Source: Paramicrosporidium saccamoebae KSL3 (lineage: Eukaryota; Fungi; Cryptomycota). Taken from it: a DNA stretch of 32,000 bases. The first letter of the stretch is position 1. Every line of letters begins with the position of its first letter. Position numbers and translations under genes: made by a program. The notes under the pieces were generated by a model. It worked only from the letters and a program-made list of their open reading frames with translations, ran no database searches and was not told where the DNA came from. Location of the stretch: assembly GCA_002794465.1 (NCBI GenBank), contig MTSL01000213.1:52019-84018 (forward strand), in the 5' to 3' direction. Of the stretch, positions 8,056-27,138 are shown in pieces.

Positions 8056-8076
8056 GATAACCGATTGGTCAATTTA

Positions 8077-8677
8077 TTACAAACGTTTTTCCGTCCGACC
8101 GTAGGCCGTATCGTGCGCTTTGTATTCTAAATGGACAGAGGACGGGAGCTGCAGCACAAGACGCAGCTGGTCGCGTAGGCGAATCTTCTGGTCCTCGTCG
8201 TTGGCATTGCGATTCCACACGGATATAATATCTTCAGCATAACGCACCGACACTATCATGCCACAAACCCCATAGTCATCAAGGAGTCCTGAACATGCGG
8301 CCAACAACTACACCATAAATTCAGCAGTCTTTTCTTACCAAATGCTCCCATAAACGTGTCACAACTCCTTTTCGAAGCCGCACTGCCCACTTGCCGCCAA
8401 GGGCATTTGCATCATCTTCCCATGCGGGCTTGATTCCCGCCCGGAACACCTGATAGTCGGAATTGATGGCCAGCTCCCTTGGCCGCTTCAGATGTCCATA
8501 TACTGCCCAAAAATCTTCCGCCGTGCTAAAGGTGCCGATGGAGTGCAAGTTGGATTCGTAGTTGGCAGCAGCAACGGCCCCGCGCCCATGGCGGATCAGA
8601 TACCAAAATGTCCAGCTAGAGTGCAGCGGCAGGGCTAGTTGGGTCGAACCGGCAGCGGCTACTGTTGCAAATGTCAT
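8077..8677 (-). CDS. EIF4E2: eIF4E-family cap-binding protein, 4EHP/nCBP-like; exons 8339-8677 and 8077-8307; 189 aa
   Basis: Motifs PLHSSWTFWY, TFSTAEDFWAVY, FRAGIKPAWED..NALGGKW, EDIISVWNRNA, LPSSVHLEYKAH. The two track ORFs join in frame through a 31-nt intron. Confidence 0.85.
8308..8338 (-). other. 31-nt spliceosomal intron in eIF4E
   Basis: gtaagaaaagactgctgaatttatggtgtag; phase 0; restores RLWEHL-LLAACSG. Confidence 0.88.
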
Positions 8678-9119
8678 GTTGTATTGTCGCCGTATTCGGT
8701 ATTCCTTTGTCGGCGAGACTGAGAAACTGGGACTGCCAGGGTATATAAAATTATGTACCGATTAGAGAGTAAATCCAGTGATCGGGGATTGAGGGCCCTC
8801 GGTAAAAGAGTCTTTTGATAAAAGGTTTTCTCGATAAAAGGTTCTGTCGGTGAGAGAGTCTATCACTGTCGTATCTGAGGACCAAGAAGAAAGGATTCCT
8901 ATTATCAACCTTGCATTTACTACAAGCCTCACAATCGTGTCAAGCCCCTTGTCCACGGCTAGGCTTGCATAGATTCGTCGAGTTTATACGTGGATTAATA
9001 CAATGACTCGGTTGCAGAAAATGAACATTTGCCAATGAGGCGAGAACGGGGGTGATTCGACCATCTTCACACTGGCAATGTGGTTGATGGGACCTGCAGC
9101 AGGCCTAAGCCTTTCTGAA

Positions 9120-10712
9120 ATGTGGTTTCCAATCATACTCTTTTTTCTTGGAATCACCACCTGTATCACAGTAGAATTTACTCCTGAGACCTTGCTTCAG
9201 CAGAGTACACTTGAACAAGTCAACTGTCTCCTGACTGCAGTATCGTTTGACAATTCAAACAACGTGCGTACTTTTCTCGGGCTGTTGGAGTGCCCAATAC
9301 ACAACTTTAAGAAACTTTACTACAACCACATTCGAGAGAGTACTAGGTTGGGGGCATTGAAAGAATTGGCGAGAGATCCAAAAATGCACGATTTGCTATT
9401 TCAGGCAGATAAACTAGTCACCTGTCCTGAGCTTGCATGCTGGATTTTTCTGGTTCTAAAAATCGAATATGATGGGCGACTGCTTGTCAACTCAGGAGGA
9501 GATACTTACGCTGCCGTGGGCACATTCATGAAATATCCAAACTTGCTGGAGGCTGTAATTCAAGAGGCAACTAAAAAACTGCACGAAATGACAAGTTTGA
9601 ACTGGCTGAGAGAATATCTACGCGTTGCGTCTACAGAGGACTCGTTGAATCTATTGGATATCCTTGAGGATCATATGACTCCCCAAATACTGGCAATATA
9701 CTTTGAGAGCTTTCCTGGACAGACAGCATTCCTGGATGTTTATCTAACTAATACCATGACTGATGATGCCGATAAAGTCATCCGCCTATTAATTGCACAC
9801 GCCGCCAAGTACTGGGCATATATCGAGTTTACCGAAGAACAATTAGAAGTAATCAATAATGTCTGGACCATCGCCGTTAGTGGGGACAACAGGGCGTTTC
9901 AAGGATTTATTGAACAGTATTTAGAGAAAACTGAGGCATCTGGAAATTTGTTTTTCGAGGTTGTGGAGAGATTGACTGCAGCCAGCAGACAATTGGATAC
10001 CCGGCCCAGCTGGGGGCTCCTGGGATCTTTGCTCTTGATGTGTAATTCTCACCCATATATCCCGCAAAAAGATTGCAAAAGACTGACTGTTGACTATATC
10101 AATGAGATGACGCCATCACGCACCACTCCGCTGATGACCCGGCTTATTTCCACAATTTACCCCCTCAAATATCCTACTCCACCTGTAGCATACTGGTCCG
10201 CAAAGATGCTTCCCCCAGAAGAGGCACGATTGTTGTGGTTAAGAAGCGACACCTTGCATATTGCAGCAAAAGGTTTTCGCGCTAACCGTTCAATCAGCGA
10301 TCTGGCCTGGTACTTGCGAGATTTCAGACAATTCCCATGGAACGCACGGCTTAAGGGTGCGCCGGTGGTAAAAGTCATCAGGACCGAGGCCAAAAGCGCC
10401 ATCTTCCACCTCTATCGGTGCAATATAGACCATCGTATCAAAGCGACAGATGGAGGCAACGCATACCTCTTGGTCAGGACGCTATTAATGGCGTTACCGT
10501 ATGCTGTTGCGCGAGGAGAGTTCCTGGACATTAGTGTTCTCACCAGCAAGGGAACGGAGCATTCTTGGATACGTCTTTGTGACCAACTATCTTACGAGCT
10601 TGAGGAGGAGAAACTAGACCCTTACGTGAAGCTGAGGGATATATTGCAGTACTCTGGGTTCTTGTACTACTTTACGCCAGCCTCCCTACAACAGCTCCTT
10701 GTTAATAAATAA
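9120..10712 (+). CDS. Secreted family paralogue 1, 530 aa from ATG 9120, unknown function
   Basis: Signal-like MWFPIILFFLGITTC. Family motifs WLREYL, MTPQIL, ALPYA, YFTPASLQQLL. The track start at 9078 adds 14 aa ahead of the signal-like segment. Confidence 0.88.
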   Translation: MWFPIILFFLGITTCITVEFTPETLLQQSTLEQVNCLLTAVSFDNSNNVRTFLGLLECPIHNFKKLYYNHIRESTRLGALKELARDPKMHDLLFQADKLVTCPELACWIFLVLKIEYDGRLLVNSGGDTYAAVGTFMKYPNLLEAVIQEATKKLHEMTSLNWLREYLRVASTEDSLNLLDILEDHMTPQILAIYFESFPGQTAFLDVYLTNTMTDDADKVIRLLIAHAAKYWAYIEFTEEQLEVINNVWTIAVSGDNRAFQGFIEQYLEKTEASGNLFFEVVERLTAASRQLDTRPSWGLLGSLLLMCNSHPYIPQKDCKRLTVDYINEMTPSRTTPLMTRLISTIYPLKYPTPPVAYWSAKMLPPEEARLLWLRSDTLHIAAKGFRANRSISDLAWYLRDFRQFPWNARLKGAPVVKVIRTEAKSAIFHLYRCNIDHRIKATDGGNAYLLVRTLLMALPYAVARGEFLDISVLTSKGTEHSWIRLCDQLSYELEEEKLDPYVKLRDILQYSGFLYYFTPASLQQLLVNK

Positions 10713-10721
10713 ATTAGTCAT

Positions 10722-12311
10722 ATGCAAGTACTGCTATTGACTGTGCTGGTGACCACCGTTGCTGGTCTATGGGTCTCCTTCACGTTAAACAATCTACATC
10801 GGTATGGCAGTAGACAGACTGTGGTGGCCCTCATGTCGATTTTCAGCCTGGGGAGGAGGAATATCGACATCATTTGCCAAATGTTGGCGTCTCGTGAATA
10901 TGATTTGCACACTATTTATGATGAAATCACAGAATCTAGTAATAGGGCAGACTTGCTGAGCAGCCTGTACGAGGATCAAAACCTACATGATTTACTATTC
11001 AATGCGCGCAAATTGATACATAACCACCGACTTGCATATTTAGTTCTGCTAAGGACCCCGACAAGATACAAGGGGAATTTGGTCTCTGATGCGTCAACAA
11101 CAGCAATTAACATTGCACAATTGTATGGATTTCCTTTACTCCTGAAGGCACGTCTGATATACATTGCAGTGAATGCTCAGATGGGCAACGTAGAGACTTT
11201 GGAGTGGCTGGCGGAGTATCTAGCTGGATCTAGCATCAAAGAAGCTCGGGGTGTGATGAATCTACTAAGCCCTCAAGAAATGACACCACATGTTCTGCAA
11301 GTATTTCTTGACCGACTTAATGAAGATGCAATTTTTTTGCAAACGTTTTTACATGATGATGATGCAATGGTCATGGATCTCCTGAGAAGGTTAATGGTGT
11401 TATGTGTAGCGGTGAGGCTGAGGAATAAAGATTTATCCCCACAGCAGCAGCTTGTGGGAATGGAAAGGTGGAAGCGGATTCGAGGAATGAGATTGTTCTA
11501 CAAGAAAAAGGAAATTAGCGGAGAGTCACTATATTCCTTTGCAATGAACCAGATGGAATCGGACGATGGTAAGCTTAGAGAACGAGCGATGGATGCACTG
11601 AGTTATTGGGGATTATCCACACGGGACAGGTCGTATTGGGGAATGTTGACGGGATTAATGGAGTTGGGAGAAGGAGATGTGGCTTGGTTCTTCCGGACTG
11701 TGCGCAGAGAATCAGTTGCTCCCATGACGTTCCTTTCCCTCTGTCGACAGTTCATAACGATATGCCTGGAACATTTGCCAAGATTTAAGGACTGGCCCGA
11801 TGAGTATTTTTTTTACGAGCTACTCCCTCTCAATGTGGTTGTGCAAGAGTGGATGCGTGGGGGACAATTTACCCTTTTGCAAGCCGATGAGATGCACTAT
11901 TCAACGCTGATAGAAGCGGAGGGCGAAATACTTGAATATTCAAAGCTTCCCTGGAACGGACACGTGGGCGAAGGGCGTGTTACTACATGGATTGGCGACG
12001 CACTAATTGCAAAGCTCCAGAGAATCTTATCTGGCTCAATATACACATCAGGGTCATTTGTAACATGTATGGCCCTGACCATCCCATATTTGATCGCCTG
12101 CAAAAAGAAGCTGGACTTTTCCAGAGCATTCCAGGATCTTTCACCTAATGCCACTTGGAAACAGTTGTATCATTATCTCGACCGGAACTTTCCGTCCAAA
12201 AGGAAGCTTGCTTCATTTATTGCACAAATGGAAGACTTGACAGAGTATTTTACGTTTACATCCGTACGAATTCTTATAGATAGTTCGTACTACTATCACG
12301 CAATCCCATAA
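10722..12311 (+). CDS. Secreted family paralogue 2, 529 aa
   Basis: Signal-like MQVLLLTVLVTTVAG. Motifs WLAEYL, MTPHVL, WIGDALI, TIPYL, YFTFTSVRILI. Confidence 0.88.
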   Translation: MQVLLLTVLVTTVAGLWVSFTLNNLHRYGSRQTVVALMSIFSLGRRNIDIICQMLASREYDLHTIYDEITESSNRADLLSSLYEDQNLHDLLFNARKLIHNHRLAYLVLLRTPTRYKGNLVSDASTTAINIAQLYGFPLLLKARLIYIAVNAQMGNVETLEWLAEYLAGSSIKEARGVMNLLSPQEMTPHVLQVFLDRLNEDAIFLQTFLHDDDAMVMDLLRRLMVLCVAVRLRNKDLSPQQQLVGMERWKRIRGMRLFYKKKEISGESLYSFAMNQMESDDGKLRERAMDALSYWGLSTRDRSYWGMLTGLMELGEGDVAWFFRTVRRESVAPMTFLSLCRQFITICLEHLPRFKDWPDEYFFYELLPLNVVVQEWMRGGQFTLLQADEMHYSTLIEAEGEILEYSKLPWNGHVGEGRVTTWIGDALIAKLQRILSGSIYTSGSFVTCMALTIPYLIACKKKLDFSRAFQDLSPNATWKQLYHYLDRNFPSKRKLASFIAQMEDLTEYFTFTSVRILIDSSYYYHAIP

Positions 12312-12341
12312 TTGCCAACTTGAAAGGGATGGGCTATTAAA

Positions 12342-12399
12342 TGGGCTGGCAACACATTAATTACAAACTCTAACAATGTTATCTGGCTCAATATCCACA
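12342..12399 (+). pseudogene. Degraded duplicate of a paralogue 2 coding segment (11988-12047)
   Basis: Shares ttatctggctcaatat (16 nt identical) plus flanking similarity. Reads WAGNTLIT against WIGDALIA, then loses frame. Confidence 0.6.
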
Positions 12400-12457
12400 C
12401 GAGACGATTGACGATTAATTCATGTTGTTGCCTCATGTTGCTGCCATGTCGTTAATC

Positions 12458-12587
12458 CACATTACAACTTTATATTACTAATTCACATTACAATTCTACA
12501 TTACTAATTCACATTACAACTTTGCATTACTAACTCACATTACAACTTTGCATTACTAATTAAAATTACAACTTTTCATCATTAATT
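12458..12587. repeat. 26-nt minisatellite, 5 copies
   Basis: Unit cacattacaactttgcattactaatt at 12458, 12484, 12510, 12536, 12562. Confidence 0.93.
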
Positions 12588-12674
12588 TGCAAATCTCCTA
12601 CTATACAAGTTCCCTCTCCATCAATGGCTCACACACAATCAGACACTCACTACAGCGCACTAGTCCGGGGTATA

Positions 12675-14210
12675 ATGACTATTTTCCAGTTGCTAGTCTT
12701 TATTACATGCGTTGCCTCGCTTGAGATCCAATTTACAGAAAAAGAACTAGTGTATAATGGAACGTTCGAGTCCATGGAGGTCATTTTCAAATCGATTAGT
12801 TTCAGCCTGCCGAATGCTATGAAAGTGGCAGAGATGTTTCGTTCGCCATTATATGAGTATGCAATCCATTATGATGGAATTGGAGAGACTAAAGAATGCA
12901 TTGACCAGCTGGTAGAGTTGGCAAAAGAAAAAGAGTTGAATGCCGCGCTGCTCTCCGTATCCAAATTGGTTGCCGATCCAAGACTTGCGCGTAGAATCCT
13001 GGCCGAGAATATTCCACTTGAAACGTGTCTGGTATGCATAGAATCCGAAATTGGAGGGTTGCGACTAAGAATGACCGATGAATGGGTACAAGAGAGTCTA
13101 ATGCTTCTTGCCACCAAGCAACTCTCCCGTATGGATTCTCTTTGCTGGCTGCGGCAATACCTAGAACACGCAACTAAGGCAAAGATTTCTCGGCTGGCAG
13201 AGCTGCTAGTCCCGAACATGACACCCGATATTATCGCACTGCTTCTACCCAAGACAAATGCAGTGTTTTTGGAAAATTATTTATCTACTGATGTACTCTG
13301 CAGACTGCTAATTGTCTCTTTGGCAAAAATGACGTGTCAGGCTAGTCTCACTCCTCTGCAAGAGAGTATAATTTATGCTCGTTGGCAGGATTTCTCCTTA
13401 GAGACAGTCCGAATTCACGAAGAATCACATTCTGGTGACGTATTCACAAGCTTCAAAGACCATCATTTAAGTGATTCTGAGCCTGCGGCGGATCCGCAAT
13501 TGTTTGTAAAAGTGTTTGGACTGTTGGCCAATATAGGAAAAGACAGAAGCGATCTTTCGTTTTGGGCAATTTTGGCAAAATTGCTTCTACATTGCGATGG
13601 CGTCGTGGATCAAGGCGTGTGCATGGAGCGAACCGCATGGTACCTTGAAACTGTAGATTTCTCGATAGTTCCGCCATCCGTTATTAGAGAGCTGATATTT
13701 CGCCATGTTCCGCGATGGGATGATTCCTATTTTAAAAAGACTTTGGAACGTATCCCGACGAGTCATATCCCTAACAGATTGCTGCTTCCACAAACTGCCT
13801 TGCAACGATGGGTGCGCTACCCGCCGTTCATAATGCTACCACAAAAACATGACCGGGACCTAAAAACTTGGGAAAAAGTCGCAAGTCTCATTGTTGGCCG
13901 GCGAGTACTCCCGCTGAACGTGTGGGTCTGTGGCCAATGGATCGGCGATGCGCTCATTCGGCGCGCAGAGTCCACCGTGCAGAGCATTGAGGGAATGCTA
14001 ATGGCCTGGCCGTATTTGCTCCTGACGGGGCGAAAAATGGCCATGGGAGCGCTCTTTGAGGATACGGATCAGAACTGGCAAATGTTCATCCGTCGAGTAA
14101 ATGTTTTAGCTAATCGTAATCAAAGGATGATGCTAGAAGCATTTTACATTCCAAGGTTCTTTACCATTGAGACATTGCGCATGCTAATAGACAGCACCTT
14201 TAAGCAGTAG
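12675..14210 (+). CDS. Secreted family paralogue 3, 511 aa from ATG 12675
   Basis: Signal-like MTIFQLLVFITCVAS. Motifs WLRQYL, MTPDII, WIGDALI, AWPYL, FFTIETLRMLI. The upstream ATG 12624 would add 17 polar residues. Confidence 0.88.
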   Translation: MTIFQLLVFITCVASLEIQFTEKELVYNGTFESMEVIFKSISFSLPNAMKVAEMFRSPLYEYAIHYDGIGETKECIDQLVELAKEKELNAALLSVSKLVADPRLARRILAENIPLETCLVCIESEIGGLRLRMTDEWVQESLMLLATKQLSRMDSLCWLRQYLEHATKAKISRLAELLVPNMTPDIIALLLPKTNAVFLENYLSTDVLCRLLIVSLAKMTCQASLTPLQESIIYARWQDFSLETVRIHEESHSGDVFTSFKDHHLSDSEPAADPQLFVKVFGLLANIGKDRSDLSFWAILAKLLLHCDGVVDQGVCMERTAWYLETVDFSIVPPSVIRELIFRHVPRWDDSYFKKTLERIPTSHIPNRLLLPQTALQRWVRYPPFIMLPQKHDRDLKTWEKVASLIVGRRVLPLNVWVCGQWIGDALIRRAESTVQSIEGMLMAWPYLLLTGRKMAMGALFEDTDQNWQMFIRRVNVLANRNQRMMLEAFYIPRFFTIETLRMLIDSTFKQ

Positions 14211-14357
14211 TAAAACAGTTATATTTGCGCTTTATTGCAACCACGCAGTGGTATATCTGTAATCCATGCATCCTCGATAATTTATTATTTGGCAACACGC
14301 GACTCTCCTGGTTGTCGGCCCAGCCAGCAAAGTATTTTGGACTGCTTTATTAATGTA

Positions 14358-14514
14358 GCGTAGTGGGGATAATACCACAGACGGGAAGGGGGGTTGTTCA
14401 CTGCTAATCCTAGAACAGTATGGATACACATCTCACTGTGCTCACATACCCAGCAAAGCGATCCACTCTAGCACACAAATACCCAACTAATCAACCCTCT
14501 GCCTCTACGTCACA
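14358..14514 (+). repeat. Dispersed non-coding element A, copy 1 (pairs with 20316-20477)
   Basis: Identical first 15 nt, a G-run, a 43-nt core (14397-14439) with 1 mismatch, and shared aaatacccaactaatca and tctacgtcaca blocks. Confidence 0.9.
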
Positions 14515-14593
14515 TAGCCAATTAATCAATCCTCTACATCACAATTAAGATCCCTGGTCTGTAAATAAGCAATCTCACAATTGGCAATATTTC

Positions 14594-16126
14594 ATGTTAG
14601 CACTCATCGTACTATCACTCCCATTCGTGCTCTCCGTCAAAGTTTGCATCTCGCCGAGGCAATTTGCACGACAATTTAGCCGAAACTGCATCGATGTAGT
14701 GGTTGGAAGTTTTGAGATAGAAGCACGGAATTTACTTGCCTTTACGGAGCTACTCAATAGTGACGAATACAATTATCGTCAGCATTATGATATTATTGTC
14801 GAATCGCCCGAAAGAACCGAACAGCTGCAGACTCTTATTAAGCAAGAGTCACTGCACGGTGAGCCATTACTTAGTGTCAGCAAGCTGGTTATTAATCCAC
14901 AACTCGCCCAGACCATGTTTAGCAATGGGAGGAGATATTCGGGAGTGCTGGTGAGCAAGCTTCCCGTGAACAACCTTGAGCAAGTAGAGTTTTATTGGAG
15001 CAACAGCCATCTGTTTAGAAGGATTATTTGCTATGCGCTTGAAAATCAGATGCATCTGGTGGAAGACTGGGACTGGCTATATGGATATCTCAATGTCGCT
15101 GGCTCTGACACAGCCCGGTGGCTGCTATTCAAGATAGGAGTGGATATGTCCGCTGCTATGCTGTATCGCTTTGTTTATAAATTCCCCAGCCTCATGTCAG
15201 CATATCTGGAGTGGAGTGGTCCGGATTACCTCTTGCAGGCAATTAATGTACATTTGGTGAGGCTGATCTATGGCGTGCAGTTGACATCAGCACAATTGCA
15301 TGCGCTAAAGAGAGGATGCAGAGAGGTCACAAATATTCGTCTACTGCAGCTAGTTGAGTGGGTCTTGTCTCCATCCTCAGGAGCGTCCCAAAAAGGCTAC
15401 AGCGCGCTGTTAGAGAGTCTATACCGACTTGCTTTGTTTCAGAATAATCGAATAGTGTGGACCATCATAGGCCACGTCATTCGTTTATGCGATCTATTCT
15501 ATATGCCCAACTGTGCAGAGATAGTCGCTAAATATCTGCAAACGGTGAAAATGGAAAATACCTGTCCTTGGATGGCCCGAGCGCTGATAAGCAAGCATCA
15601 CAATATTTCCTCCCCTATTATTACGCGCTTCCCTGCTACCTTCATACCCTATCAACGCCTGCCACTGCCGCTAGTTCGGTCCTTGTGGCTGCGAGACAGT
15701 CCGCTGACTACTTGGATTGGCCAGGCATTGCCGGTGCGGGACGTTTCCATTCTCATCAAAAACTTTCAAAGGGGTATCATGGGACTACCCGTTAACCTGG
15801 ATAGCTCCTTGGACGCTGGTGAAATGTGTTGTACTGAGTGGTTCATCACCAAGTTCACATCACTGGGGCCATCTGACAAGATTGAGCTCTTGAGAGCCAT
15901 GATTGTGTCATGGCCATACTTGATTTTTCAACGATTGCAAGTCCGCCATCCCCTGATCTACGATGATGTGGATGCTGACTGGGAAACTTATTTCCACCGA
16001 CTGACTTACCGGCTGGATATTGACCGGCTATACTTGCTAGATCTGTGGGAGCTGGCAGGGCAGACAAACGTTATGACATATTTTACCCCTTCCACACTCC
16101 AACAGCTACTCACGGCCAAACAATAA
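14594..16126 (+). CDS. Secreted family paralogue 4, 510 aa
   Basis: Signal-like MLALIVLSLPFVLS. Motifs HYDIIVESPER, WLYGYL, SWPYL, YFTPSTLQQLL. Confidence 0.88.
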   Translation: MLALIVLSLPFVLSVKVCISPRQFARQFSRNCIDVVVGSFEIEARNLLAFTELLNSDEYNYRQHYDIIVESPERTEQLQTLIKQESLHGEPLLSVSKLVINPQLAQTMFSNGRRYSGVLVSKLPVNNLEQVEFYWSNSHLFRRIICYALENQMHLVEDWDWLYGYLNVAGSDTARWLLFKIGVDMSAAMLYRFVYKFPSLMSAYLEWSGPDYLLQAINVHLVRLIYGVQLTSAQLHALKRGCREVTNIRLLQLVEWVLSPSSGASQKGYSALLESLYRLALFQNNRIVWTIIGHVIRLCDLFYMPNCAEIVAKYLQTVKMENTCPWMARALISKHHNISSPIITRFPATFIPYQRLPLPLVRSLWLRDSPLTTWIGQALPVRDVSILIKNFQRGIMGLPVNLDSSLDAGEMCCTEWFITKFTSLGPSDKIELLRAMIVSWPYLIFQRLQVRHPLIYDDVDADWETYFHRLTYRLDIDRLYLLDLWELAGQTNVMTYFTPSTLQQLLTAKQ

Positions 16127-16671
16127 TCCTGCCAATGCAAATCGGTAGGCCTTGCCGAGTGGCATGTACAAGAGGAATTTTGCCAGCTATGACTCTCACT
16201 AACTGTGCATGTGCCGCGTAGTAAAAAAGCACCACGGTGCCAATTTAAATGAGCGGCAAGGAACTGTTCCTTATCAATTGGAATGAACTTGTTGACATAG
16301 TGTCCAAAAATTAGAGAGTCGATCTTTCCATTCCTTGACTCACTCTCCTTTTCATATTTGGACAAATACCCAGCACCAAGCACCCAGTACTCAGCACCCA
16401 GCTAAATACTCCACTATCTCACAAATCCATCGCTCTACAGTATTACAGGATCAGGGAAGCCCAAGGACCGTTCCATATTTTTCTTTATGCCGGATCGATA
16501 GGACGGCCACCTGTCATTTTAATACTTGAACAATAATGTCACATTAAATTGATCAAACCGCCCATGGTTATCGGCCCCTCAAAACTCCTCAATATTATTC
16601 CAAATCACACATTATCATCATCAGCCATTGATTCCGAGTAAATGATTGGTCTTTGCTTCACTCTCTAGCGG

Positions 16672-18171
16672 ATGCTTGTCGTGGCGCTTTTGGTGCAAGT
16701 CTGTGCAGGCTTTATAGTACGATTTTACCCAGAAGGACTGACTCGCTCCCTTGGCGAGACTTCAAGGGCAATACTGGGTAGCTACCTTATTAATGAGGAG
16801 GGAATTGAAACGATCCACAAGCTGCTCCAATATGAAGGATGTAATTTTCAATGCTATTACAATGGGATTCGCGAAACGACCGAACGTGTAAAGCTCCTCA
16901 CGCCATTCATGCAGGATAAAAGATTGCACAAGACCATTTTCAGTGGGGGAAAGTTGATTGGAGACTTGGGATTGGCGCATACGCTGCTCAACAGTGGATG
17001 GGGAGAGTACACTGGAACAGTGTTGGACGTGCTTCCACAGAATCCAATCACATTCTGGCGAGGCTATGAGACACTTCGGATGCTTATTGAGAATGCCGTG
17101 GAGCGAGGAGAAGAGTGCGTGGATTACCAATGGCTGCGCCGGTACTTGAGAATTGCATATCCAGAAGCCGCCAACTCCCTATTAAGATTGTTCACTCCGA
17201 AAATGACGCCCACGATCCTCACTGAATTTCTGCTGTTTGCCTATCTGGAGGCTTATATACCAGCGGGGCTTCCAGATATCGAACTATTAGAGCGTTCGGT
17301 GATGACGATTGTGACGGGCCACCGACTCAACATAGATTGCCGCATTCGCTTCTGGGCCTCTATTCCGGAATACTTGGGCGGCGTATCTACCGTCATAATC
17401 GCGTCGCTGCTTGATACGGTAATGAATGGAGATCCTACAGATGAAAACTACATAGAGTTGTTGTCATTGTCTTTTCGGTTTGCGCAGAGGCAGAGATCGA
17501 GGCCCTGGTGGAGCGTCATTGCGTATTTGACTAGCATTTGCCACGAGCGAAAAATCAGTGAGGGAGTTTGTATGGGTACTGCTGGGATATATCTTGGCAC
17601 TGTCCCACCTAGCTATACCAACCCTAACGATATTAAATTGGTCACAAAGGCCTACAGGAGCGGAATCGATGTAAACATGCGTACCAGGTTTCCCTTGCAC
17701 TACTGGCCCATAGAATATCGACCATTAGACGTCCGTTTGGCTGCTTGGAGACAGCAAATGCCGATAATTCAATGGTCGTTTCACCGTGCAAGCACATTAG
17801 ACGCAGTCTTGGAAGGTGTTTTGATAATGCGTAGTTATCCATCAAATGTCACATTACAATCGACATTGCTCGGAGAATACCTCATACAACATGTGAAATG
17901 GGTAATGAGATTGACTGTCAACAAACCAGATCCCACATTAGCTATCATCATGTCGCTTCCTTACCACGTGCGGGCGGGACGGAAATGCCCCATCTGGCAG
18001 GATATTGATCTAACGGGAGGATGGGCCAAAGTGGTCAATAGGTTGACTATTAAATCAAGTTTGGCTACTAGAAAACGGGTCTGGAAGCTCTTGGAAATAT
18101 CTCGGCTGTCGTCACAATTTGCCCCTTCTGAGGTCTTTGTCTATGCAAACATTGTAGTAATTGATATATAA
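16672..18171 (+). CDS. Secreted family paralogue 5, 499 aa
   Basis: Signal-like MLVVALLVQVCAG. Motifs YYNGIRETTER, WLRRYL, MTPTIL, WPIEY, SLPYH. Confidence 0.87.
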   Translation: MLVVALLVQVCAGFIVRFYPEGLTRSLGETSRAILGSYLINEEGIETIHKLLQYEGCNFQCYYNGIRETTERVKLLTPFMQDKRLHKTIFSGGKLIGDLGLAHTLLNSGWGEYTGTVLDVLPQNPITFWRGYETLRMLIENAVERGEECVDYQWLRRYLRIAYPEAANSLLRLFTPKMTPTILTEFLLFAYLEAYIPAGLPDIELLERSVMTIVTGHRLNIDCRIRFWASIPEYLGGVSTVIIASLLDTVMNGDPTDENYIELLSLSFRFAQRQRSRPWWSVIAYLTSICHERKISEGVCMGTAGIYLGTVPPSYTNPNDIKLVTKAYRSGIDVNMRTRFPLHYWPIEYRPLDVRLAAWRQQMPIIQWSFHRASTLDAVLEGVLIMRSYPSNVTLQSTLLGEYLIQHVKWVMRLTVNKPDPTLAIIMSLPYHVRAGRKCPIWQDIDLTGGWAKVVNRLTIKSSLATRKRVWKLLEISRLSSQFAPSEVFVYANIVVIDI

Positions 18172-18505
18172 ACTAATAGTCTCTATGGCCATCACATTTC
18201 AAGTCATTGCGTTTATAGCAATCTTGAACTGAGATTACTTTTTTAATCAGCCTTTACTAAAGATACAAAACTCCCAGCTTATTGCGATATCGTTGTGTAA
18301 TAAACATGCCCAAAGAGGTGGTTTCCGGTCTAGCCGGTGACATCAACGAGTGTTCCTCAGTACTCCCATCTGGGCATGGCATTCCAATCTCGATCGTAGT
18401 GATGCAAGAGTTAAATCACAGCTTCAATTCAGCAATCTACCGCTCCAACTCAGCAATCTTAATTTTATGCTGGACGATGGGCCAATTTAATAACCAGGGA
18501 TTAAC

Positions 18506-20074
18506 ATGTTGTTTCTGTTGTTACTTCATAGCGTAGCTGCCTTGAGCATCACTTTCGAGCCACACACACTTGCCCGAGACACTCCTGCCAGGTCCATCGG
18601 GCTCGTGTTTAAAACCTTTCGTATCAATCCGAAAAATTTGAAAACTGTGGCTGATATACTCTTATATGATGGATTCCACTATGGGCACCATTTTAATGTG
18701 CTCGAGTCAGTGAACAGATGGAGTCAGTATCAGTTCTATGTAGGATATACTGAATTACATGGAACCATTTTTTCACCTCCTAAGCTGGCGTGCAATCCTC
18801 CGCTGGAATTTTCACCCACAAAGGGCTACACAGGAGCTATTTTCGGGCCGTATAATTACCCTCCAGAAATGGACTTTGATCCAGGCGCGCTCCGCCAAAT
18901 GTTAAAGTATGGCATTACTCACCAAGTCAGCGATATGCAATCGTTAAGTCTGTTTGAGCAATTTATTGGAATGAGCAGAACTAAAGAGGCCCAATGGCTG
19001 TTGCGTCGGCTAACTGCTCGTGAAGTGTTTCCAGAACTGCTGGCCATCTTTCTTGAAGGGTGCAAAAACACTATACTTTCTTCATATCTCCACCAGGATC
19101 TTGAGCCTGATGAACGGCTAATAAGACATTTGAATGTGCATTTGGCCAAATTCAGTCACAAAGGCATACTGACTAGACGGAAAAAGAACCGCTTAGAGGA
19201 GTCATCCTTTTTTCTGGACAGTAATGGACCCCATTTCAAACTGAACACTATTGCGCGCCGACTGCTGGCATACACTAACAACAACTGCTCACACCGTGAC
19301 AGCGCTGCCCAGGCGACAGATTTTGGAGAATTGTTTGAAGGATTAAAAACGTATGCCAGCGACACGCGAGCATACTGGGGAATGATGATCACACTAATTG
19401 CAGAGTCGTTTGTGATGAAATCTGTTAGCACCGAACAGCCTAACGACGCGGTTAATTGGCTTCTTTCGAAGGATACGCAGTTCTTTCCGATTTTACCAAT
19501 GAAACTCTTGGTGTCCAGGATGCCGCAACTAGCAGACAAAGTGTCGTCACGGTATTTTCCAATCACACAATGTGAGTTGCTTCCGCGAATGCGACACTGG
19601 ATGGAAGCAAAGGTGATTCAGGTTACAAAAGACTCGATCGATTCAGAGGCAAGGTCGGTTGAAGAGATGAAATGGCTCTTCCTGGACCACATCAATGTTG
19701 GTGTATGGCCGGTGAATCTTTATTGTTCCCGGAATGGAAATCTCATGGATTGGACGATTGAAAGGGCAAATTGCATTCTGGAATCTGACATTTTCGACAA
19801 TATGTCCCAGAGCTGCTTGCAATCGTACGATTTGGTAGAGGAGGCCATGATCCTCGTCTTTGGTGTCATTCCGTATCTGCTCTTTGAGCGGCGTCGTGTT
19901 AACTTGGAAAAGTTTCTCCCTTTTCAATTGAAAACGTGGTCTGATGTGTTTACTCATCTGAAGACAATGTGTGATGGTGATCCGCGACTGGCAACGCAAG
20001 CCCAAGAGGTGCTATCACTGTCTTTGATTAGCGATTACTTTTCCCTTGATGAGATACGAACCCTGATAGGGTAG
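18506..20074 (+). CDS. Secreted family paralogue 6, 522 aa
   Basis: Signal-like MLFLLLLHSVAA. Motifs LHGTIFSPPKL, RAYWGM, VIPYLL, YFSLDEIRTLI. Confidence 0.87.
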   Translation: MLFLLLLHSVAALSITFEPHTLARDTPARSIGLVFKTFRINPKNLKTVADILLYDGFHYGHHFNVLESVNRWSQYQFYVGYTELHGTIFSPPKLACNPPLEFSPTKGYTGAIFGPYNYPPEMDFDPGALRQMLKYGITHQVSDMQSLSLFEQFIGMSRTKEAQWLLRRLTAREVFPELLAIFLEGCKNTILSSYLHQDLEPDERLIRHLNVHLAKFSHKGILTRRKKNRLEESSFFLDSNGPHFKLNTIARRLLAYTNNNCSHRDSAAQATDFGELFEGLKTYASDTRAYWGMMITLIAESFVMKSVSTEQPNDAVNWLLSKDTQFFPILPMKLLVSRMPQLADKVSSRYFPITQCELLPRMRHWMEAKVIQVTKDSIDSEARSVEEMKWLFLDHINVGVWPVNLYCSRNGNLMDWTIERANCILESDIFDNMSQSCLQSYDLVEEAMILVFGVIPYLLFERRRVNLEKFLPFQLKTWSDVFTHLKTMCDGDPRLATQAQEVLSLSLISDYFSLDEIRTLIG

Positions 20075-20315
20075 ACCTGGATTGATTTGGCCTCTAGTTT
20101 ATCTATTTTACCTGGTTGAGTTTGTGCTAGCCCATAGGTTAAAGGTTCTGTTGATGAGTGAACTGCTTTTTATTAAAGTGTATAGCTTCTTTCTAGGTAG
20201 CCATTCTTAATATAACCAAACTGGCCGGTGGGACCGCTATCTGGGTCGGACACCAACAATAAGTGGATAACAGGTTCGCTAGACAAGTTTTTATAAAATT
20301 TGTAGTGAGTGTGTC

Positions 20316-20477
20316 GCGTAGTGGGGATAAATAGTATGGACTGTCAGGCGGAAGGGGGGGGGTTTATTCACTGCTAATCCTAGAATAGTATGGATACACA
20401 TCTCACTGTCCCCAAATACCCAGCAACTAATCAACCCTCTACGTCAAATACCCAACTAATCAGTCTTCTACGTCACA
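20316..20477 (+). repeat. Dispersed non-coding element A, copy 2
   Basis: Core 20367-20409 matches 14397-14439 at 42 of 43 nt. Confidence 0.9.
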
Positions 20478-20510
20478 AGTGTATTAAAGGCCCTGTTAAA
20501 TGATATCCGA

Positions 20511-20579
20511 TTCTGATGGGTAATCTTGATAGTTATCCCACAATCCGGTGTGTTACGAGTGGTAGTCTATATGCCACAT
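20511..20579 (+). repeat. Dispersed repeat B, copy 2
   Basis: Ungapped 52/69 match to 5156-5224. Confidence 0.7.
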
Positions 20580-20640
20580 GCCTTAATCAATACCTACTTG
20601 TGAGACTAGTAATAAAGCTCTGCAGTGGGGGTTTCCTGTT

Positions 20641-20761
20641 CGTGGCTGTACTATCTCAAAACACTCTTGCACATTAACTGGTCCGTGGCTGTACTATCTC
20701 AAAACACTCTTGCACATTAACTGGTCCGTGGTTATACTATCTCAAAACGCTTTTGCGCATT
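20641..20761. repeat. 43-nt tandem repeat: two identical copies plus one degenerate partial copy
   Basis: cgtggctgtactatctcaaaacactcttgcacattaactggtc at 20641 and 20684; diverged copy from 20727. Confidence 0.95.
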
Positions 20762-20822
20762 GGCAGATCCTCTATTGAAATCTCTGAACATGTATATGAT
20801 ATACTTTGTCACATTTATCACT

Positions 20823-20830
20823 TATAAAAG
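20823..20830 (+). promoter_or_regulatory. TATA-like box (TATAAAAG) 48 nt upstream of paralogue 7
   Basis: Sequence match and position. It is the same octamer as upstream of symplekin. Confidence 0.35.
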
Positions 20831-20878
20831 GTTTTCTTAGATGTACTGTTAACAATCGTCCCCGGAGCATGCCAGGGT

Positions 20879-22393
20879 ATGAGTATCAAGTTTTTGTGGC
20901 TGGCGGGACTCGTGCTAGTGGCAGGCATAAGAATAACTACTACACCCCATGATCTCTCACTTAATTGCTACTCGGAGATTGTTGATATTATCTGCGCTTC
21001 ATTTGGACAACAATCAGCTCATGAGATGGCACAACTAATTAAAGATCCAGAACAGGTGTTTAAACAACATTACGAGGCCATTCAAGAGACACCGAGTCGA
21101 ATCGAGATGCTAAAGCTGCTGATAGGCAAGCCAGGATTGGAATCACTGTTCCGAGTAGAAAAGCAGGTTTTTAATCCCATAATCACGCAGTGGATTCTAG
21201 TTGACGGCCATGTCAGCGAACCCTTCTCCAGTAACCGCGTGGGACCCCATCTGCGTAGTCTGTTCCGCAACCCAACGCTACGTGAGCGGATTGTAGAACA
21301 TATTTTGGCACAGGAAGCAGGGACGATGGAGTCCTATGAATGGCTTGAAGCGTATCTCGAAATAGCCGAGCCTGATCAGATAACCTCAGTGTTTGAACAA
21401 CTGCAGCATGTCATGTCGCCAGTGCTACTGCTAAAATTTTTCAACGAGTTCTCAACTGGATGGAGTCTACTGCAATCCTATTTAGAGGAAGGAGGGTTAG
21501 TGCGCTATATGAATGCCACTTTGGTCTGGAAAATGTTCCGTGGGACGGCTGAGGAAATGTGGGCGCTAGAAGCTTTGATTGAGGACCATAGCCCTAATGG
21601 CGAGATGGTTTCGACCCTCCATGCTCTCTGCCAAATGCTCCAGAGAAGCAGGAAAGATGTGTCATATGTCACGGTGAGAGATGCCATTGAGGAGCTGAAT
21701 GGTCTGCGTGGGAGTTTGCCTGACACAACCGCCATTGACGGGAGCATTCTGGTACTACTGGCCGAGATCAGTGATTGCATTTTGCCAGAAGATAAGGGAA
21801 AACTCTTCCAACGCGCCTTTGAGATCACTCAACCCGCCCGCATGCCCACTTTTCTAGTACGTCGATGCATAGATGTACTGCGTCGGCAGGGCTACAATGT
21901 GTCCGAACTGTTGGAGGGATTACCCCGGGATAAATGGCCTATAGAACTGTTGTCGTTGGAGGAGCGCCGGCTTTTGTGGCTGCAACATGTGCCCATGGGT
22001 CTTCCACCAGCTGATCTAGTCGCATCTATGAGCTATTACACGCTAATAGACTCTCTCTGGGACGGCCTTATCCCCACCGGGCCCTTTAGTGATTTAGCCG
22101 TTTCTCAGCTTGATACCCAACGCTTCCCTCACGGTCTCACAGCGCGGGGATTCCGCGATATGCTGATTGCGCTTCCATACCTGGTAGCTACGAGACAACG
22201 CACGACCAAACTAGGCGGCCTATTTTTGGTTAACAGTTGGGATAGATTGCTTAGCCACGCTCGTACCGAGATGTCCCATGAGCCCCGATCGTATGAATTG
22301 GATTTGTGGCAGCAGATCATCAATGTGTCCTTTCTAAAGTATTTTTTCACTCCCAAAGAGATTTGCACTCTGGTGAGTGGCAACGACACATAA
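20879..22393 (+). CDS. Secreted family paralogue 7, 504 aa
   Basis: Signal-like MSIKFLWLAGLVLVAG. Motifs HYEAIQETPSR, WLEAYL, MSPVLL, WPIELL, ALPYL, FFTPKEICTLV. Confidence 0.88.
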   Translation: MSIKFLWLAGLVLVAGIRITTTPHDLSLNCYSEIVDIICASFGQQSAHEMAQLIKDPEQVFKQHYEAIQETPSRIEMLKLLIGKPGLESLFRVEKQVFNPIITQWILVDGHVSEPFSSNRVGPHLRSLFRNPTLRERIVEHILAQEAGTMESYEWLEAYLEIAEPDQITSVFEQLQHVMSPVLLLKFFNEFSTGWSLLQSYLEEGGLVRYMNATLVWKMFRGTAEEMWALEALIEDHSPNGEMVSTLHALCQMLQRSRKDVSYVTVRDAIEELNGLRGSLPDTTAIDGSILVLLAEISDCILPEDKGKLFQRAFEITQPARMPTFLVRRCIDVLRRQGYNVSELLEGLPRDKWPIELLSLEERRLLWLQHVPMGLPPADLVASMSYYTLIDSLWDGLIPTGPFSDLAVSQLDTQRFPHGLTARGFRDMLIALPYLVATRQRTTKLGGLFLVNSWDRLLSHARTEMSHEPRSYELDLWQQIINVSFLKYFFTPKEICTLVSGNDT

Positions 22394-22615
22394 TAATAAG
22401 CTGGTCAGTGAACACTGACGTAGTGTGATAACCTAATAAGCTGGAGAGTGGGCATTGACGCATTATAATAAATTGATGACATGCTTCAGGTTTTATATTC
22501 AAATTGCAAAGTAGACATTCAAACTCATGATCCACATTAAACATCCATAATTACATTGTAATTTAATGCAAAGATCCATTTACAGCATCTAATTTCCAAG
22601 CTCAAAGCACCATAA

Positions 22616-25600
22616 CTAGCTATTTATCAAGTTCAACTCAAGGCCAAGTAAACAAAAGGATTGCTGCACTAATGACACTACAGGCGGATCCTCTAGACGG
22701 AGACATTCGCACAATTCGGCGTAGAGATAGAACAGATGACCACGTCGCGTGTCAAGCAGCATACGTCGAGTGCCAGTACTCTCACTAGCCAACCCGGGTG
22801 GAAGAAGCAGCTCGTTTAGTGCCGAAAGTACATAGATCATCTCATCTTGACGCACCCGTGGGAACGGCATACGACCCAAAAGCGTCTTGTCGCGGGTGTA
22901 ACGTTGCATCACGTCCTGACATCGTGCCAGGAGGATCGGCAGGGCGGCATGAAGAATAGCAGATGGTAGGGCAATGAGAGATGATGGCAGAGTGAAGGAG
23001 GCGCGACTGTGGGCGGGTAATGCCTGGCCCGGGGTGCTGCGATCTGTACAAATGGAGAAGAGCGCATGAAGACACGTGATGGCCAATTTTTCCTTAATCA
23101 CGGGCTGAATGGACACGGTCATAGTGCTGGGCGAAGATGGATGTGATGCGTCAGAAAGATCCGTATATAACCGACTGGTCTGTTCCAATGCGACTAAAAG
23201 ACGCTCAATCAGGGACGGCGCCACATTTCCCATCAGCGGAAGCAGCGAATCGCGCACAAAAAGTACCTGCGTGACGTCAAAGTCCTCGTCGGCGTCCAGC
23301 TGATCCAGCGCCAGGGCTGCCGGTACCTGTGTTTTGCTGACATCCAATACATTCTCCATCAGCGTCACCACCACCGGCCATGCATTGTCCGAGGCATAAG
23401 TTGGAAGGATGGCCAATAGCACTGAATTGAGTGTTTTGGTGGCCAACTTCCATAGCGCCACTGGCCCCGGTCCCGTTGGTGCTCGGTATTTAAGAGTCAT
23501 TAGTCGTCCCAATGCCTGGATTACCACAACATAAGCCCCCTCCGTGTGCAATGTAACATCGGACGACCAATCCGCAGTTCGGATTCGCAGTCGTTCCAGT
23601 ACCACTGTCACCAATGCAATGTATGACACTTTCCCACCCGCCCCTTGTCGCAATGAGGTTCCTGTGCCGATTCGAGATCTGCGCACTGAAGTGGTCGTAG
23701 TCATTTCCACATCGGTCAGTTCGTGCAGCCATCCCATCCACCCCGCCAACTTGCGCAGATACAATGGTCGTGCCTGTTGATGGGCACCATCATAGTCCAG
23801 CAATGTGTCAACAATCTCCAGCACTGTACGCTGCAGCTCGGTCAGAGATTCTACATCTTTCACATGGTCCTCGGGAGTGGGACTTTGCAGTGCATTATCC
23901 AAAGCATTAAAGGAAGCGTTCAGCCAATCAGTATCGTCTTGCGTCTGCAACAATCCCATGATCGGCGGTAAGATTCGTACAAATTTGAGCAGACTGTCCT
24001 GGGTATAGCACGTGCTGGTGCTCTGCATCGTACCTCCAATCTCGCACCAGCAATTCCACGCCGCCCTCCATAGATTCGTTGACGGCACACCCCCTTCACT
24101 CACGAGACGTGCGAGACACGCAATCGACGCTGTTGTCAGTTCACTGCTTTTTCCGCAAAAGTCAGAAAACAGTCCCAAAAGCTTACCCCAATGCTGCTGT
24201 TCAAACTCGTCTGATTGGCTCAAAACTGGGAGGAATTTGCAGTACAATTGTGTGGTGCCCTGAATAATGAGCAGAAACGTCTCATTCCATTGTTTCTCTC
24301 CCGTGTCACGGCTGTGATGGGTCAGATCCAAGTCTTTGTCTGTGGTTGACAATGCTGGAGTTGACTTAACAATTTGTCCGTTTGGCATCTCCAGTAACGG
24401 ATCCAAATTATCCAAGAGGATCCGCTTCCATTCTTCCGTCTTCAATGACACTCCTCCAATCTCAATTGCACGTATCATTGTCTGGATTGCACTATTCCGC
24501 ACTTCGGGACGCGCATCGCGAGACAGTCCCACGAGCTGCTTGAGAATGAGCAGCCAAAGATCTTCATCGTCCCCGCTCCTTCGCACGTGATCTGCCACAT
24601 CCCACAACAGACCAATGGCCGTCAGACTAATGTTCAGGTCCTCACTGATCCGGGCAAAGTGACTGAGCACTGATACTGTCTCACTGATCGAGCTTCGTGG
24701 CAATGTTGGCAGGAATTCGGCACAAATCAGCTTGGCACTTGAAAAGGCGCTGCGCACAATGGGCAAGGACACATCGGTGGATTCGGTGGCCTTGGAGAGT
24801 ACTCTGAACACAATAGGCCATCCCTCAGTAATGTGCGGTCCAAGATGTTGCAGCAACTTTAACAACGACTCCAAAACCGTCTTGTGTACCTCAGCCCATG
24901 TGGCTGAACCATAGAAGCGCTCCAAGGCTCCCAACAGTCTTTGCTGGAGTGCAATGTTGAATTGCTCAATTGGGACGGTTGTGGAAAACTGTGTCGTCAG
25001 CAGACTGACTGTTTCACAGCCCAATCCTCGAAGAGTCACATCTGAAGTATTCAAAATTTGCTCAAGTTGGCCAATTAATAGTTCCCAACTGGCGGCTGCC
25101 ACTGTGTCATGCTTGATGAATCGCTCTACATTTAACAGCGCGACTTGTTTAAGCTTTTGTGCAGGAAATAATGCTGTGACATTACCAGTGATTTGGCATC
25201 CAAGTTGACATAACGATCGCAGAAAATACATAAATGCCTCGTTGCTGAGGGTACGACTACTTTCCATGATCCGCCTGCACAAATCAGCAATTTCGCCCAT
25301 CCTATCCATCCCAATGCTGCCCGCCTCTGCCGTCCGTCTCACCTTGATGACATTAAACTGGTCCGTGCCATGAACAACATGCAGAATGTACAACCAAGCA
25401 TCATCCAGCAATTCTCCAATCTCCCAGCCCACATTGAGAAGCATTACTGACATGGACAGATTTGCATCGCTGACCAAGAGTGATCCGTTAGACATATTCG
25501 GACTGGGCACTGCACTGACCGTCTTTGATGATCCCTGCGAGGTGGAGATTCGGTATTCAGGAAGGGCAATATCTAATAGTTCTTCCAAGGTAGCGCTCTG

Positions 25601-27138
25601 TGCCTCCTTGAAACCCAATACTGATTCTAATCGGACCAAGTCCATCAAGGCATCAATGATCTTGCCCTGCCACTCTCCATCGAGTCTGCAGGTGGATAGC
25701 ATCATGGACTGGGACTTTAAAATCGTTGCCCAGAGTACATCCAACAATCTCCTTCCCATCATAATAATATCTGACGTTTCGTCTAGTGGAACGTATTTTT
25801 TTCCATCTGTACAGTGAGGTCTAATCTCTTCCAAAAAATAATGAAGGAAACCAGAGATGCATTCGGACGCCACCAACACCAGATATGAATCATTTACAGT
25901 GGGAGGGTGGATCTTTTCTAATTGCTGACTGATAGATACCTTTAAAGAAACTTGAGAATAAATCATCTCTATGCCGTGCAGCCTGACACCCGTTCCCAAA
26001 ATCAGATTATTAATCGAAATGAACAAATCGGGTAGGAGCTTTGACTCGATCTGGCCCTGTCTACAGGCAATTTCCATGTGCGACACCAGACCTGGATCGC
26101 CAAGAATTTCCCTAAATGTTTCCAACACCAATGCACGTTCCCAAGGAACGTCACTCTCCTCAAGTAGCCGTACGGCACAGGAAACGAAAATTTCCGTCTC
26201 GGTGGCAAAAATATCGTAGAATTCCCGGATCAGCGCCGACACGACCTTCCAAAGTCGACAGGTTTGCGAAAAATCGCTCCTCTCGGTCAACTTTTTCAGC
26301 ACCATGGGACAAACCTTTTCCCTGATCAGGCTGGCAAATACTTGATGTCGACGCATCACCCGAGAATTGTACAAAAGCACCGACTCTATCAATTCTAATC
26401 CAAAGGACTTGTTCAACGACTTTAACGGAAGCTTTAGGGGCGGTTCATCCACCACCAGCAAACAAATGTCCTGCATGATTATATAAGCATCCGCCGAGAT
26501 GGGCCGAAGAGATGCCTTTTCCCCATTATACACCGCAATAGTCACCAGCGTCACCTGCTCATCCAGGACAGGCTCGCCATCTTCCTCTACCACCCGTTCA
26601 AATAGCCAAATTACCAATTGTCTAATAATGGCAACTGCCGCATTAATCACTGTGGGAGAGCGACAGGCTTGCAGTTTAAAACAAATCTCATATGCCTTGA
26701 AGAGATCCTCACCCTGACAGGTGTAATGCGTAAGTAGTGGCATGACGCATTGCAGGGCACGCAATTGGACATCGTCAGTCTGGCCGACAGTGCGGTCCAA
26801 CACTGTTAGTACAACGGGGAGCGCAGAGGCTGGCAGGGCTGCATGAGCCACGAGTCGGTGGAGCAGGGCGACAATGTGCGACATCAGCCGGGCTGCCTGA
26901 CTGCACGTACTGGCCAGTTCCAACACCCGAGCGACATTAACCTGTTCGGCCAGCACCTGTGGCAGATTCCCAGTCGAAACATCTTTTAGCGTCTTCAACT
27001 GTGTCAAGACATCATCAGTTGCCTAGCCATCATACTAAAATTCTCAGGAGGTACAGTCTTGACTTCAGGACACTTTCTACGCGTCTCCTGAGAAATGGTT
27101 GTGAGCTCAGACTGCATAAAGGCCAGCAGTGAGGCCAT
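22616..27138 (-). CDS. MON2: Mon2 (Sec7/ArfGEF-related endosomal scaffold); exons 27055-27138 and 22616-27022; 1496 aa
   Basis: The spliced N-terminus MASLLAFMQSELTTISQETRRKCPEVKTA is typical of Mon2. Other motifs: VQLRALQ, FGLELIESVL, NISLTAIGLLW, RPEVRNSAIQT, WNETFLL. Confidence 0.92.
27023..27054 (-). other. 32-nt spliceosomal intron in MON2
   Basis: gtacctcctgagaattttagtatgatggctag; phase 0; links a 28-codon ATG exon to the long ORF. Confidence 0.85.

Follow-up and report, generated by a model that had tools for sequence, protein, structure and literature searches.

Within a stretch of 32,000 nucleotides (nt) from the genome of Paramicrosporidium saccamoebae KSL3 (assembly GCA_002794465.1, contig MTSL01000213.1, positions 52,019 to 84,018 of the forward strand), here called the window, lies a tandem array of seven genes, g1 to g7, encoding divergent proteins of about 500 amino acids (aa). 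Analysis of the array and of its relatives elsewhere points to a previously undescribed family, comparable in kind to the multigene families of secreted proteins that are confined to single clades of microsporidia-like parasites. We consider the chances about even that its members are lineage-specific helical binding proteins acting at the interface with the host, and secreted by means of a cleavable signal peptide. Positions given below are those of the window unless another contig is named.

The array and its genes

All seven genes lie on the forward (+) strand, and each is a single open reading frame (ORF) of 499 to 530 aa; none of the seven is interrupted and all are intronless, as a preliminary description of this DNA had stated. 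The first, g1, occupies 9120-10712 (530 aa) and scores 381 bits against a hidden Markov model (HMM) of the family; an in-frame ATG upstream, at 9078, would extend the protein to 544 aa. The ATG of g2 (10722-12311, 529 aa, 409 bits) falls 9 nt past the stop codon of g1. The ORF of g3 opens at 12624, but alignment with the rest of the family makes the ATG at 12675 the likelier start, giving a gene at 12675-14210 (511 aa). The remainder, each defined by its ORF together with the family HMM, are g4 (14594-16126, 510 aa), the member used for structure modelling, g5 (16672-18171, 499 aa), g6 (18506-20074, 522 aa) and g7 (20879-22393, 504 aa). When the six-frame translation of the window is searched with the family HMM, g1 to g7 are the only matches (313-409 bits), with no family fragments or pseudogene remnants in the array. 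Since there is no match outside g1 to g7 in the window, the array is without decayed copies.

How are the seven proteins related to each other? Pairwise identities in BLASTP are 20-27%, often across nearly the full length, so that the high divergence first described for the array is confirmed. The similarity between the proteins is statistically significant, with E-values (computed for a nominal database of size 1e8) of 1e-27 for g2-g3, 3e-18 for g4-g5 and 1e-15 for g4-g7, the weakest significant value being ~1e-4. Only two pairs, g5-g6 and g5-g7, fall short of significance when taken alone, and both are linked through g4. Judged by their sequences, g1 to g7 are true paralogues. Their codon usage resembles that of the flanking genes (third-position GC content 0.47-0.52 compared with 0.46-0.54; correlation of relative synonymous codon usage r = 0.71), and we rejected a recent horizontal transfer of the array on this ground. 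The array genes are native to the genome.

The NCBI gene model PSACC_03563 (PJF16601.1, 1054 aa) is a fusion of g1 and g2, because of which an exact look-up of the g2 product gave no match. On the evidence of the sequence this fusion is wrong. The TAA stop codon of g1 is placed 9 nt ahead of the ATG of g2 (10700-10725), and the junction, AATAAATAAATTAGTnnTATG, is kept at positions 1100-1125 of L001, a metagenome contig from a sister species. Because the stop codon, the 9-nt spacer and the start codon are conserved there, g1 and g2 are two separate genes and the pair is older than the split between the two species. A gap of 9 nt leaves no room for a promoter of its own, and transcription of g2 must therefore either begin inside g1 or yield a bicistronic message.

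A non-coding element of ~190 nt is present upstream of two of the genes. Its copies, both on the + strand, were located by direct repeats and alignment, at 14352-14545 upstream of g4 (direct-repeat families D3-D5 and D16) and at 20310-20480 upstream of g7, and there is a partial copy near 16363. The two copies are ~90% identical, compared with ~22% amino acid identity for the coding regions. Each contains the internal repeats CAAATACCCAGCA and CAACTAATCAACCCTCTACGTCA. The first of these, a 13-mer, has six matches at two or fewer mismatches where 0.9 would be expected by chance, and five of the six lie upstream of g4, g5 and g7. No clear terminal inverted repeats are found in the element, and scans of the g4 upstream region for bacterial-type promoters and terminators were empty, such models being uninformative for a eukaryote. 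The element could be a promoter or enhancer common to these genes, it could have arisen by gene conversion, or it could be a small repeat.

The array is set between minus-strand genes for eIF4E and MON2, in agreement with the preliminary description. The eIF4E gene comprises exons at 8321-8677 and 8077-8307 (Pfam IF4E, E-values 4e-33 and 8e-11), and its two ORFs are parted by a very short intron-like gap at 8307-8321; introns thus exist in the region, while g1 to g7 have none. Vps26, symplekin and an inositol 5-phosphatase are encoded in the upstream flank. Downstream, MON2 (22616-27007, -) is followed by a gene for a BRCT protein (27185-29881, -) and then by MRS2. The BRCT gene contains a 33-nt (11-aa) tandem repeat at 28533-28777, with ~7.5 copies of units of the form SPS[IV]xSLKxxT. 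Short intergenic tandem repeats occur in the array at 12427-12587, 18414-18459, 20638-20766 and 22394-22471, and outside it at 1680-1854 and 31878-31998, with units of 13/26, 21, 43, 40, 22 and 19-21 nt. Such repeats fill many of the spacers. Because they are found at the last two positions also, they are not specific to the array and seem to be typical of intergenic DNA in this genome. No Rfam families or tRNAs were found in the window.

Protein anatomy and the N-terminal leader

The seven proteins align collinearly. In the numbering of g1, the columns that are invariant throughout are K98, G119, W373, P460, Y461, W483 and F518; these include the invariant tryptophan, PY pair and late tryptophan that had been picked out by eye. 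The best-conserved part is an N-terminal module of approximately residues 20-230, within which the blocks HYxxIxExxxR, LHxxLFSxxKLxxNPxLA, YxG, WLxxYL and MTPxxL follow in that order. The C-terminal part is more variable, with the blocks RxxWG, PxxYxP, WxRxGP, LPxN, WPYL and the late tryptophan. A C-terminal tail of the form F[TS]PxELRxL[IV]DSS[FY] is present in 34 of 118 members, including g2 (LIDSSY), and g3 has a degenerate version (LIDSTF). In the alignment of the 81 full-length members of the family, no column is conserved as cysteine or rich in it. An internal duplication relating the N- and C-terminal halves was considered and rejected (hhalign probability ≤ 1.6%).

The preliminary description found no obvious catalytic set among the conserved residues, which it saw as W, P, Y and L only. 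This is correct for the seven proteins taken alone. It fails for the family as a whole, where polar conservation over the 81 full-length members is strong, at E72 (66/81), R76 (74/81), H90 (67/81), K98 (70/81), N102 (60/81), R222 (60/81) and N408 (63/81). Might the family then be one of secreted or luminal enzymes of new fold, with Y67, E72, R76, H90, K98 and N102 of the N-terminal domain forming the active site? These six are kept in 74-91% of the 81 members at an overall identity of 15-30%, and they fall in the module that is both the most conserved part and duplicated in one relative. Yet R76 is replaced by C in g3, E72 by R in g1, and H90 by N in g3 and is absent in g7. With substitutions at several of these positions within the array, the polar residues do not constitute a strict catalytic set. 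Moreover, the K-L-x-x-N-P sequence is placed at the start of a loop or helix in the model of g4, which would be compatible with a structural N-cap, and no similarity to an enzyme family is seen by Pfam, by PDB sequence or by fold. We therefore think an enzymatic role very unlikely.

The fold was examined by modelling. The AlphaFold2 model of g4, made from an 8-sequence alignment, is all-alpha, with ~33 helices (predicted local distance difference test score, pLDDT, 74.3; predicted template modelling score, pTM, 0.57), and the N-terminal domain modelled alone is also all-alpha (pLDDT 82.7, pTM 0.69). Foldseek gave no significant match for the whole g4 model against the PDB (best E-value 0.013, template modelling (TM) score ≤ 0.23) or BFVD (best E-value 0.086, TM score ≤ 0.25), nor for the N-terminal domain against the PDB (best E-value 0.15, TM score ≤ 0.30). 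The weak matches are to generic solenoids, karyopherins and giant-virus repeat proteins. Like the alpha-solenoids (HEAT, ARM and TPR proteins, the karyopherins, 14-3-3), the proteins are entirely helical, and CRM1, importin-beta, designed ARM proteins and 14-3-3 are the best of these matches. Unlike them, they have no Pfam repeat and no internal periodicity, and the E-values (≥ 0.013) and TM scores (≤ 0.30) are poor. We rejected the karyopherin, 14-3-3 and ARM matches as generic helical resemblance. In Pfam there is no match for g1 to g7 or 63 relatives, DUF1609, WY/RXLR and helical repeats included, and a PDB sequence search with the family profile returned a chance match only (E-value 0.5). 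Within the PDB, BFVD and Pfam, and at the depth of shallow alignments, the family has no recognizable relative, in keeping with its first description as unrecognized, and no HMM or structural match to a housekeeping family was found in these databases.

Each of the seven proteins begins with a hydrophobic, uncharged stretch, the signal-like N-terminus of the original description, and there is no other convincing transmembrane segment. The leaders and the predicted starts of the mature proteins are MWFPIILFFLGITTC followed by ITVEFTP in g1, MQVLLLTVLVTTVAG by LWVSFTL in g2, MTIFQLLVFITCVAS by LEIQFTE in g3, MLVVALLVQVCAG by FIVRFYP in g5 and MSIKFLWLAGLVLVAG by IRITTTP in g7. The residues about the predicted cleavage site (marked by a slash) are TTC/I, VAG/L, VAS/L, VLS/V, CAG/F, VAA/L and VAG/I for g1 to g7, respectively. 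Thus position -1 is small (G, S, A or C) and position -3 is V, T or C, and von Heijne's rule, read off the sequences, is obeyed. A hydropathy heuristic finds an N-terminal hydrophobic region (h-region) in 67 of the 71 N-terminally complete members of the family, with a median length of 14 residues. Of the six flanking housekeeping proteins, four lack a stretch of this kind within residues 1-60, and in MON2 and MRS2 one begins only at residue 35-41, away from the N-terminus. Directly after the leader comes a motif, [LIVMF]x[LIVF]xFxPxx[LIVMF], whose strict form is found in the first 70 residues of 17 of 99 members, compared with four occurrences in 46,387 other residues. This makes a good case that the leader is a cleaved signal peptide, though one below the standard of a dedicated predictor, and the family members of P. 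saccamoebae, of which there are at least 13, probably enter the secretory pathway.

If the leader were not cleaved, these would be type II signal-anchor membrane proteins, the N-terminal stretch tethering the helical body as a variable coat on the surface of the parasite. The only hydrophobic segment is indeed N-terminal, in some members its h-region extends to 18-23 residues, and it is followed immediately by a conserved segment. But the h-regions are mostly short for a membrane span (8-18 residues in six of the window genes, 20 in g2, in addition to the median of 14 noted above), and the small residues of the -3/-1 rule are there in all seven window proteins. A tethered coat is accordingly quite unlikely in our estimation. 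Other sorting motifs that were scanned for are either missing or found only sporadically. There is no KDEL or HDEL at the C-termini of g1 to g7, which end in LLVNK, YHAIP, STFKQ, LTAKQ, VVIDI, RTLIG and SGNDT, and a motif scan of the seven found no RxLR in the N-terminal regions, no N-terminal PEXEL, no Crinkler motif and no consistent nuclear localization signal.

Relatives, age and selection

How general is the family? An exhaustive HMMER search of 1.84 billion representative sequences (clustered at 50%) matched 117 representatives at E ≤ 1e-3, of which 88 reach E ≤ 1e-10 and 35 reach E ≤ 1e-30; most are 480-600 aa in length. Thirty of the 117 were traced to their source. Eleven of these are from P. 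saccamoebae, and 19 are from metagenome or Sequence Read Archive (SRA) assemblies in JGI/IMG, ENA or Logan, some on contigs of ~100 kb; among the 30 there is no named organism besides P. saccamoebae. The search outside the window that had been proposed thus finds the family in P. saccamoebae and in uncultured organisms, including at least one compact eukaryote. By length and scores of 550-600 bits, g3, g4, g5, g6 and g7 are the cluster representatives P0006, P0004, P0005, P0003 and P0007, the source having been traced for P0004 (g4) only. Word-indexed homologue searches, whether started from one member or from profiles of 7 or 63 sequences, recovered only P0001, P0002 or the query, and metagenome scans with the single members P0017 and P0055 gave no match.

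P. saccamoebae has at least 13 family genes (a lower bound, from 11 representatives), seven of them in the window, and the expansion in an intracellular parasite that was anticipated from the array is therefore present in this member of the Rozellomycota. PSACC_03581 is on the same contig as the array (188,315 bp), PSACC_00742, PSACC_00745 and PSACC_00750 share one 71.7-kb contig, and PSACC_00015 and PSACC_02207 are at other loci. In two of the gene models the family domain is joined to another protein, to RNase III in PSACC_00742 (P0016, 2013 aa) and to the N-terminus of a nucleotide-sugar transporter in PSACC_00745 (P0020, 671 aa). These are probably merged neighbouring genes and not real fusions.

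Four further metagenome contigs, L002 to L005 (43% GC), carry family members; two JGI samples and a pair of SRA runs are their sources. L003 has three co-oriented genes in an array, at 11-1519, 1639-3273 and 3464-5068 (P0017, P0027 and a third member). Beside the array, at 7921-9561 (-) of L002, is a relative in divergent orientation that contains the N-terminal module, of ~150 residues, twice (aa 36-197 and 353-541). The sequence of this protein shows that the module can act as an independent, duplicable domain. The neighbouring genes on L002 and L003 are eukaryotic housekeeping genes (MetAP, MRP-L28, Tau95, Spc24, Utp11, Rrp15 and Ufd2). Because of the L002/L003 three-gene array, tandem arrays of the family are not peculiar to P. 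saccamoebae.

A leader resembling a signal peptide is also what would be seen in resident housekeeping proteins of the endoplasmic reticulum (ER) or Golgi of the parasite that had diverged past recognition, and the purifying selection described below would be expected of them too. This is a highly improbable explanation. The proteins have neither KDEL or HDEL nor a transmembrane retention signal, and the fold searches brought up no known chaperone or receptor as a match; at least 13 divergent paralogues in tandem arrays, and the lack of a relative in any other named organism among the 30 traced representatives, also speak against it.

A neighbour-joining distance tree of the 81 full-length members, in which distances are near saturation and the picture accordingly coarse, does not group g1 to g7 as a clade. 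They are instead interleaved with metagenome members and with P. saccamoebae members from other loci, g1 pairing with P0009 (metagenome), g4 with P0008, g6 with PSACC_03581 and g5 with PSACC_00015. Inspection of termini by eye, unaligned and unscored, makes P0033 g7-like, P0082 g4-like, and P0102 and P0103 g6-like fragments. On L001, a JGI contig of 1418 bp, the C-terminal two-thirds of g1 has an orthologue with 58% identity, and after it comes the start of a g2 orthologue (66% identity) with its own hydrophobic leader. The ratio of non-synonymous to synonymous substitution rates (dN/dS, by the method of Nei and Gojobori) relative to L001 is 0.28 for g1 (368 codons, dS 1.08) and 0.24 for g2 (99 codons, dS 0.81). 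The array genes are fast-evolving yet under net purifying selection, and comparison of their sequences indicates that the paralogues are old and not the outcome of a recent local burst. The preliminary description had proposed diversifying birth-and-death evolution. Our results do not bear this out: the paralogues are old and interleaved, orthologues of g1 and g2 have been retained, and the dN/dS values of these two orthologue pairs, together with the absence of pseudogene remnants, speak against both a recent burst of birth and death and diversifying selection across whole genes.

Such constancy might be expected of structural proteins belonging to the parasite itself, forming the spore wall, the polar filament and anchoring apparatus or the surface coat of the sporont, with no action on the host. 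Paramicrosporidium makes microsporidia-like spores with a polar filament, and leaders resembling signal peptides, a dN/dS of ~0.25 with retained orthologues, and old paralogues conserved across several uncultured relatives would all suit extracellular structural components. However, the proteins known from polar tubes and spore walls typically have repeats or low-complexity sequence rich in Pro, Gly, Ser or Lys, whereas these are globular all-alpha proteins with a conserved hydrophobic core and no conserved cysteines, and at least 13 very divergent paralogues would be unusual for structural components. We regard a purely structural role as possible but doubtful.

A possible role at the host interface

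P. saccamoebae is an intranuclear parasite of Saccamoeba, of the Rozellomycota, that grows naked in the host nucleus (PMC5701793). In the reading to which we give about even chances, the all-alpha proteins of ~500 aa would enter the secretory pathway of the parasite through the short cleavable N-terminal signal peptide, and after cleavage would leave the parasite at its surface. As nothing envelops the parasite within the nucleus, secretion would place them at or in the host nucleoplasm, so that they would be released into it or face it. There they may serve as non-enzymatic helical binding proteins, different paralogues engaging different partners in the host or at the interface. The absence of conserved cysteines, of a membrane anchor and of an ER-retention signal is in keeping with proteins that would work in a reducing compartment beyond the parasite cell.

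Several observations weigh against this proposal. A leader of 12-16 residues could in principle act as an uncleaved anchor. The strong conservation of E72, R76, H90, K98, N102 and N408 leaves room for an enzymatic or parasite-intrinsic role, and a gene-wide dN/dS of ~0.25 with long-retained orthologues is unlike an effector in an arms race. The structure models were built on shallow alignments of 7-8 sequences, and the restriction to one lineage is drawn from the 30 traced representatives of the 117. A bolder version of the proposal would see in the family the first repertoire of effectors from a Rozellomycota parasite living inside a nucleus, a new helical fold released into the nucleoplasm with nuclear targets specific to each paralogue, where the post-leader motif [LIV]x[IV]xF[TE]PxxL and the tail F[TS]PxELRxLIDSS[FY] would act as signals for export, sorting or docking. 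In this extended form we think it unlikely.

The family most resembles the large gene families of microsporidia, such as the NemLGF1-type families of Nematocida and Pancytospora and the InterB/DUF1609 family of Encephalitozoon. Clade-specific large families with signal peptides are regarded as candidates for host exposure in microsporidia (PMC10393165). They are defined (Reinke 2017; Wadi 2023) by at least 10 paralogues per genome, more than 50% with a signal peptide or transmembrane segment, and confinement to one parasite clade (PMC10393165). Here too the organism is a microsporidia-related obligate intracellular parasite, with at least 13 paralogues in the genome against a threshold of 10. 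A putative N-terminal secretion signal is present in most members (67/71 by our hydropathy heuristic, where the definition uses SignalP), the clade would be narrow as judged from the 30 traced representatives, and there are predicted helical domains with no recognizable fold or Pfam domain. Yet there are clear differences. There is no sequence or Pfam relation to the microsporidian families, as far as the named ones can be tested through Pfam, and no match to DUF1609. Those families have 100-240 copies, compared with at least 13 here, and arose in species-specific bursts, in contrast to the ancient paralogues and retained orthologues of the present family. Their host is an animal cell and not the nucleus of an amoeba, and for some Nematocida families host exposure has been shown experimentally, where ours is predicted from sequence.

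There is also some likeness to the RxLR and WY/LWY effectors of oomycetes, which similarly combine a signal peptide, a short conserved motif and an all-alpha body conserved mainly at W, Y, L and P, and which form clustered multigene families. In contrast to these, the present family contains no RxLR-dEER, PEXEL or LxLFLAK motif and has no Pfam WY/RXLR match. Profile-profile comparison reveals no internal repeat, and the top 50 PDB matches listed for the whole protein, like those for the N-terminal domain, include no WY/LWY structure.

The genome paper of P. saccamoebae makes no mention of secreted or effector families, and six locus tags and accessions of the family (three array models, two other members and one UniProt entry) are uncited in the literature searched. 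The analysis corrects the annotation of the genome in that PSACC_03563 is two genes, while PSACC_00742 and PSACC_00745 look like fusions with their neighbours. In microsporidia, secreted families confined to one clade are the norm, and the kind of family described here is thus unsurprising. It has over 100 divergent relatives, apparently from organisms not in culture, and may serve as a marker for finding such parasites in metagenomes. The manipulation of hosts by Rozellomycota is almost unknown, and the family provides a concrete set of candidate proteins for contact between host and parasite in a lineage at the base of the microsporidian radiation.

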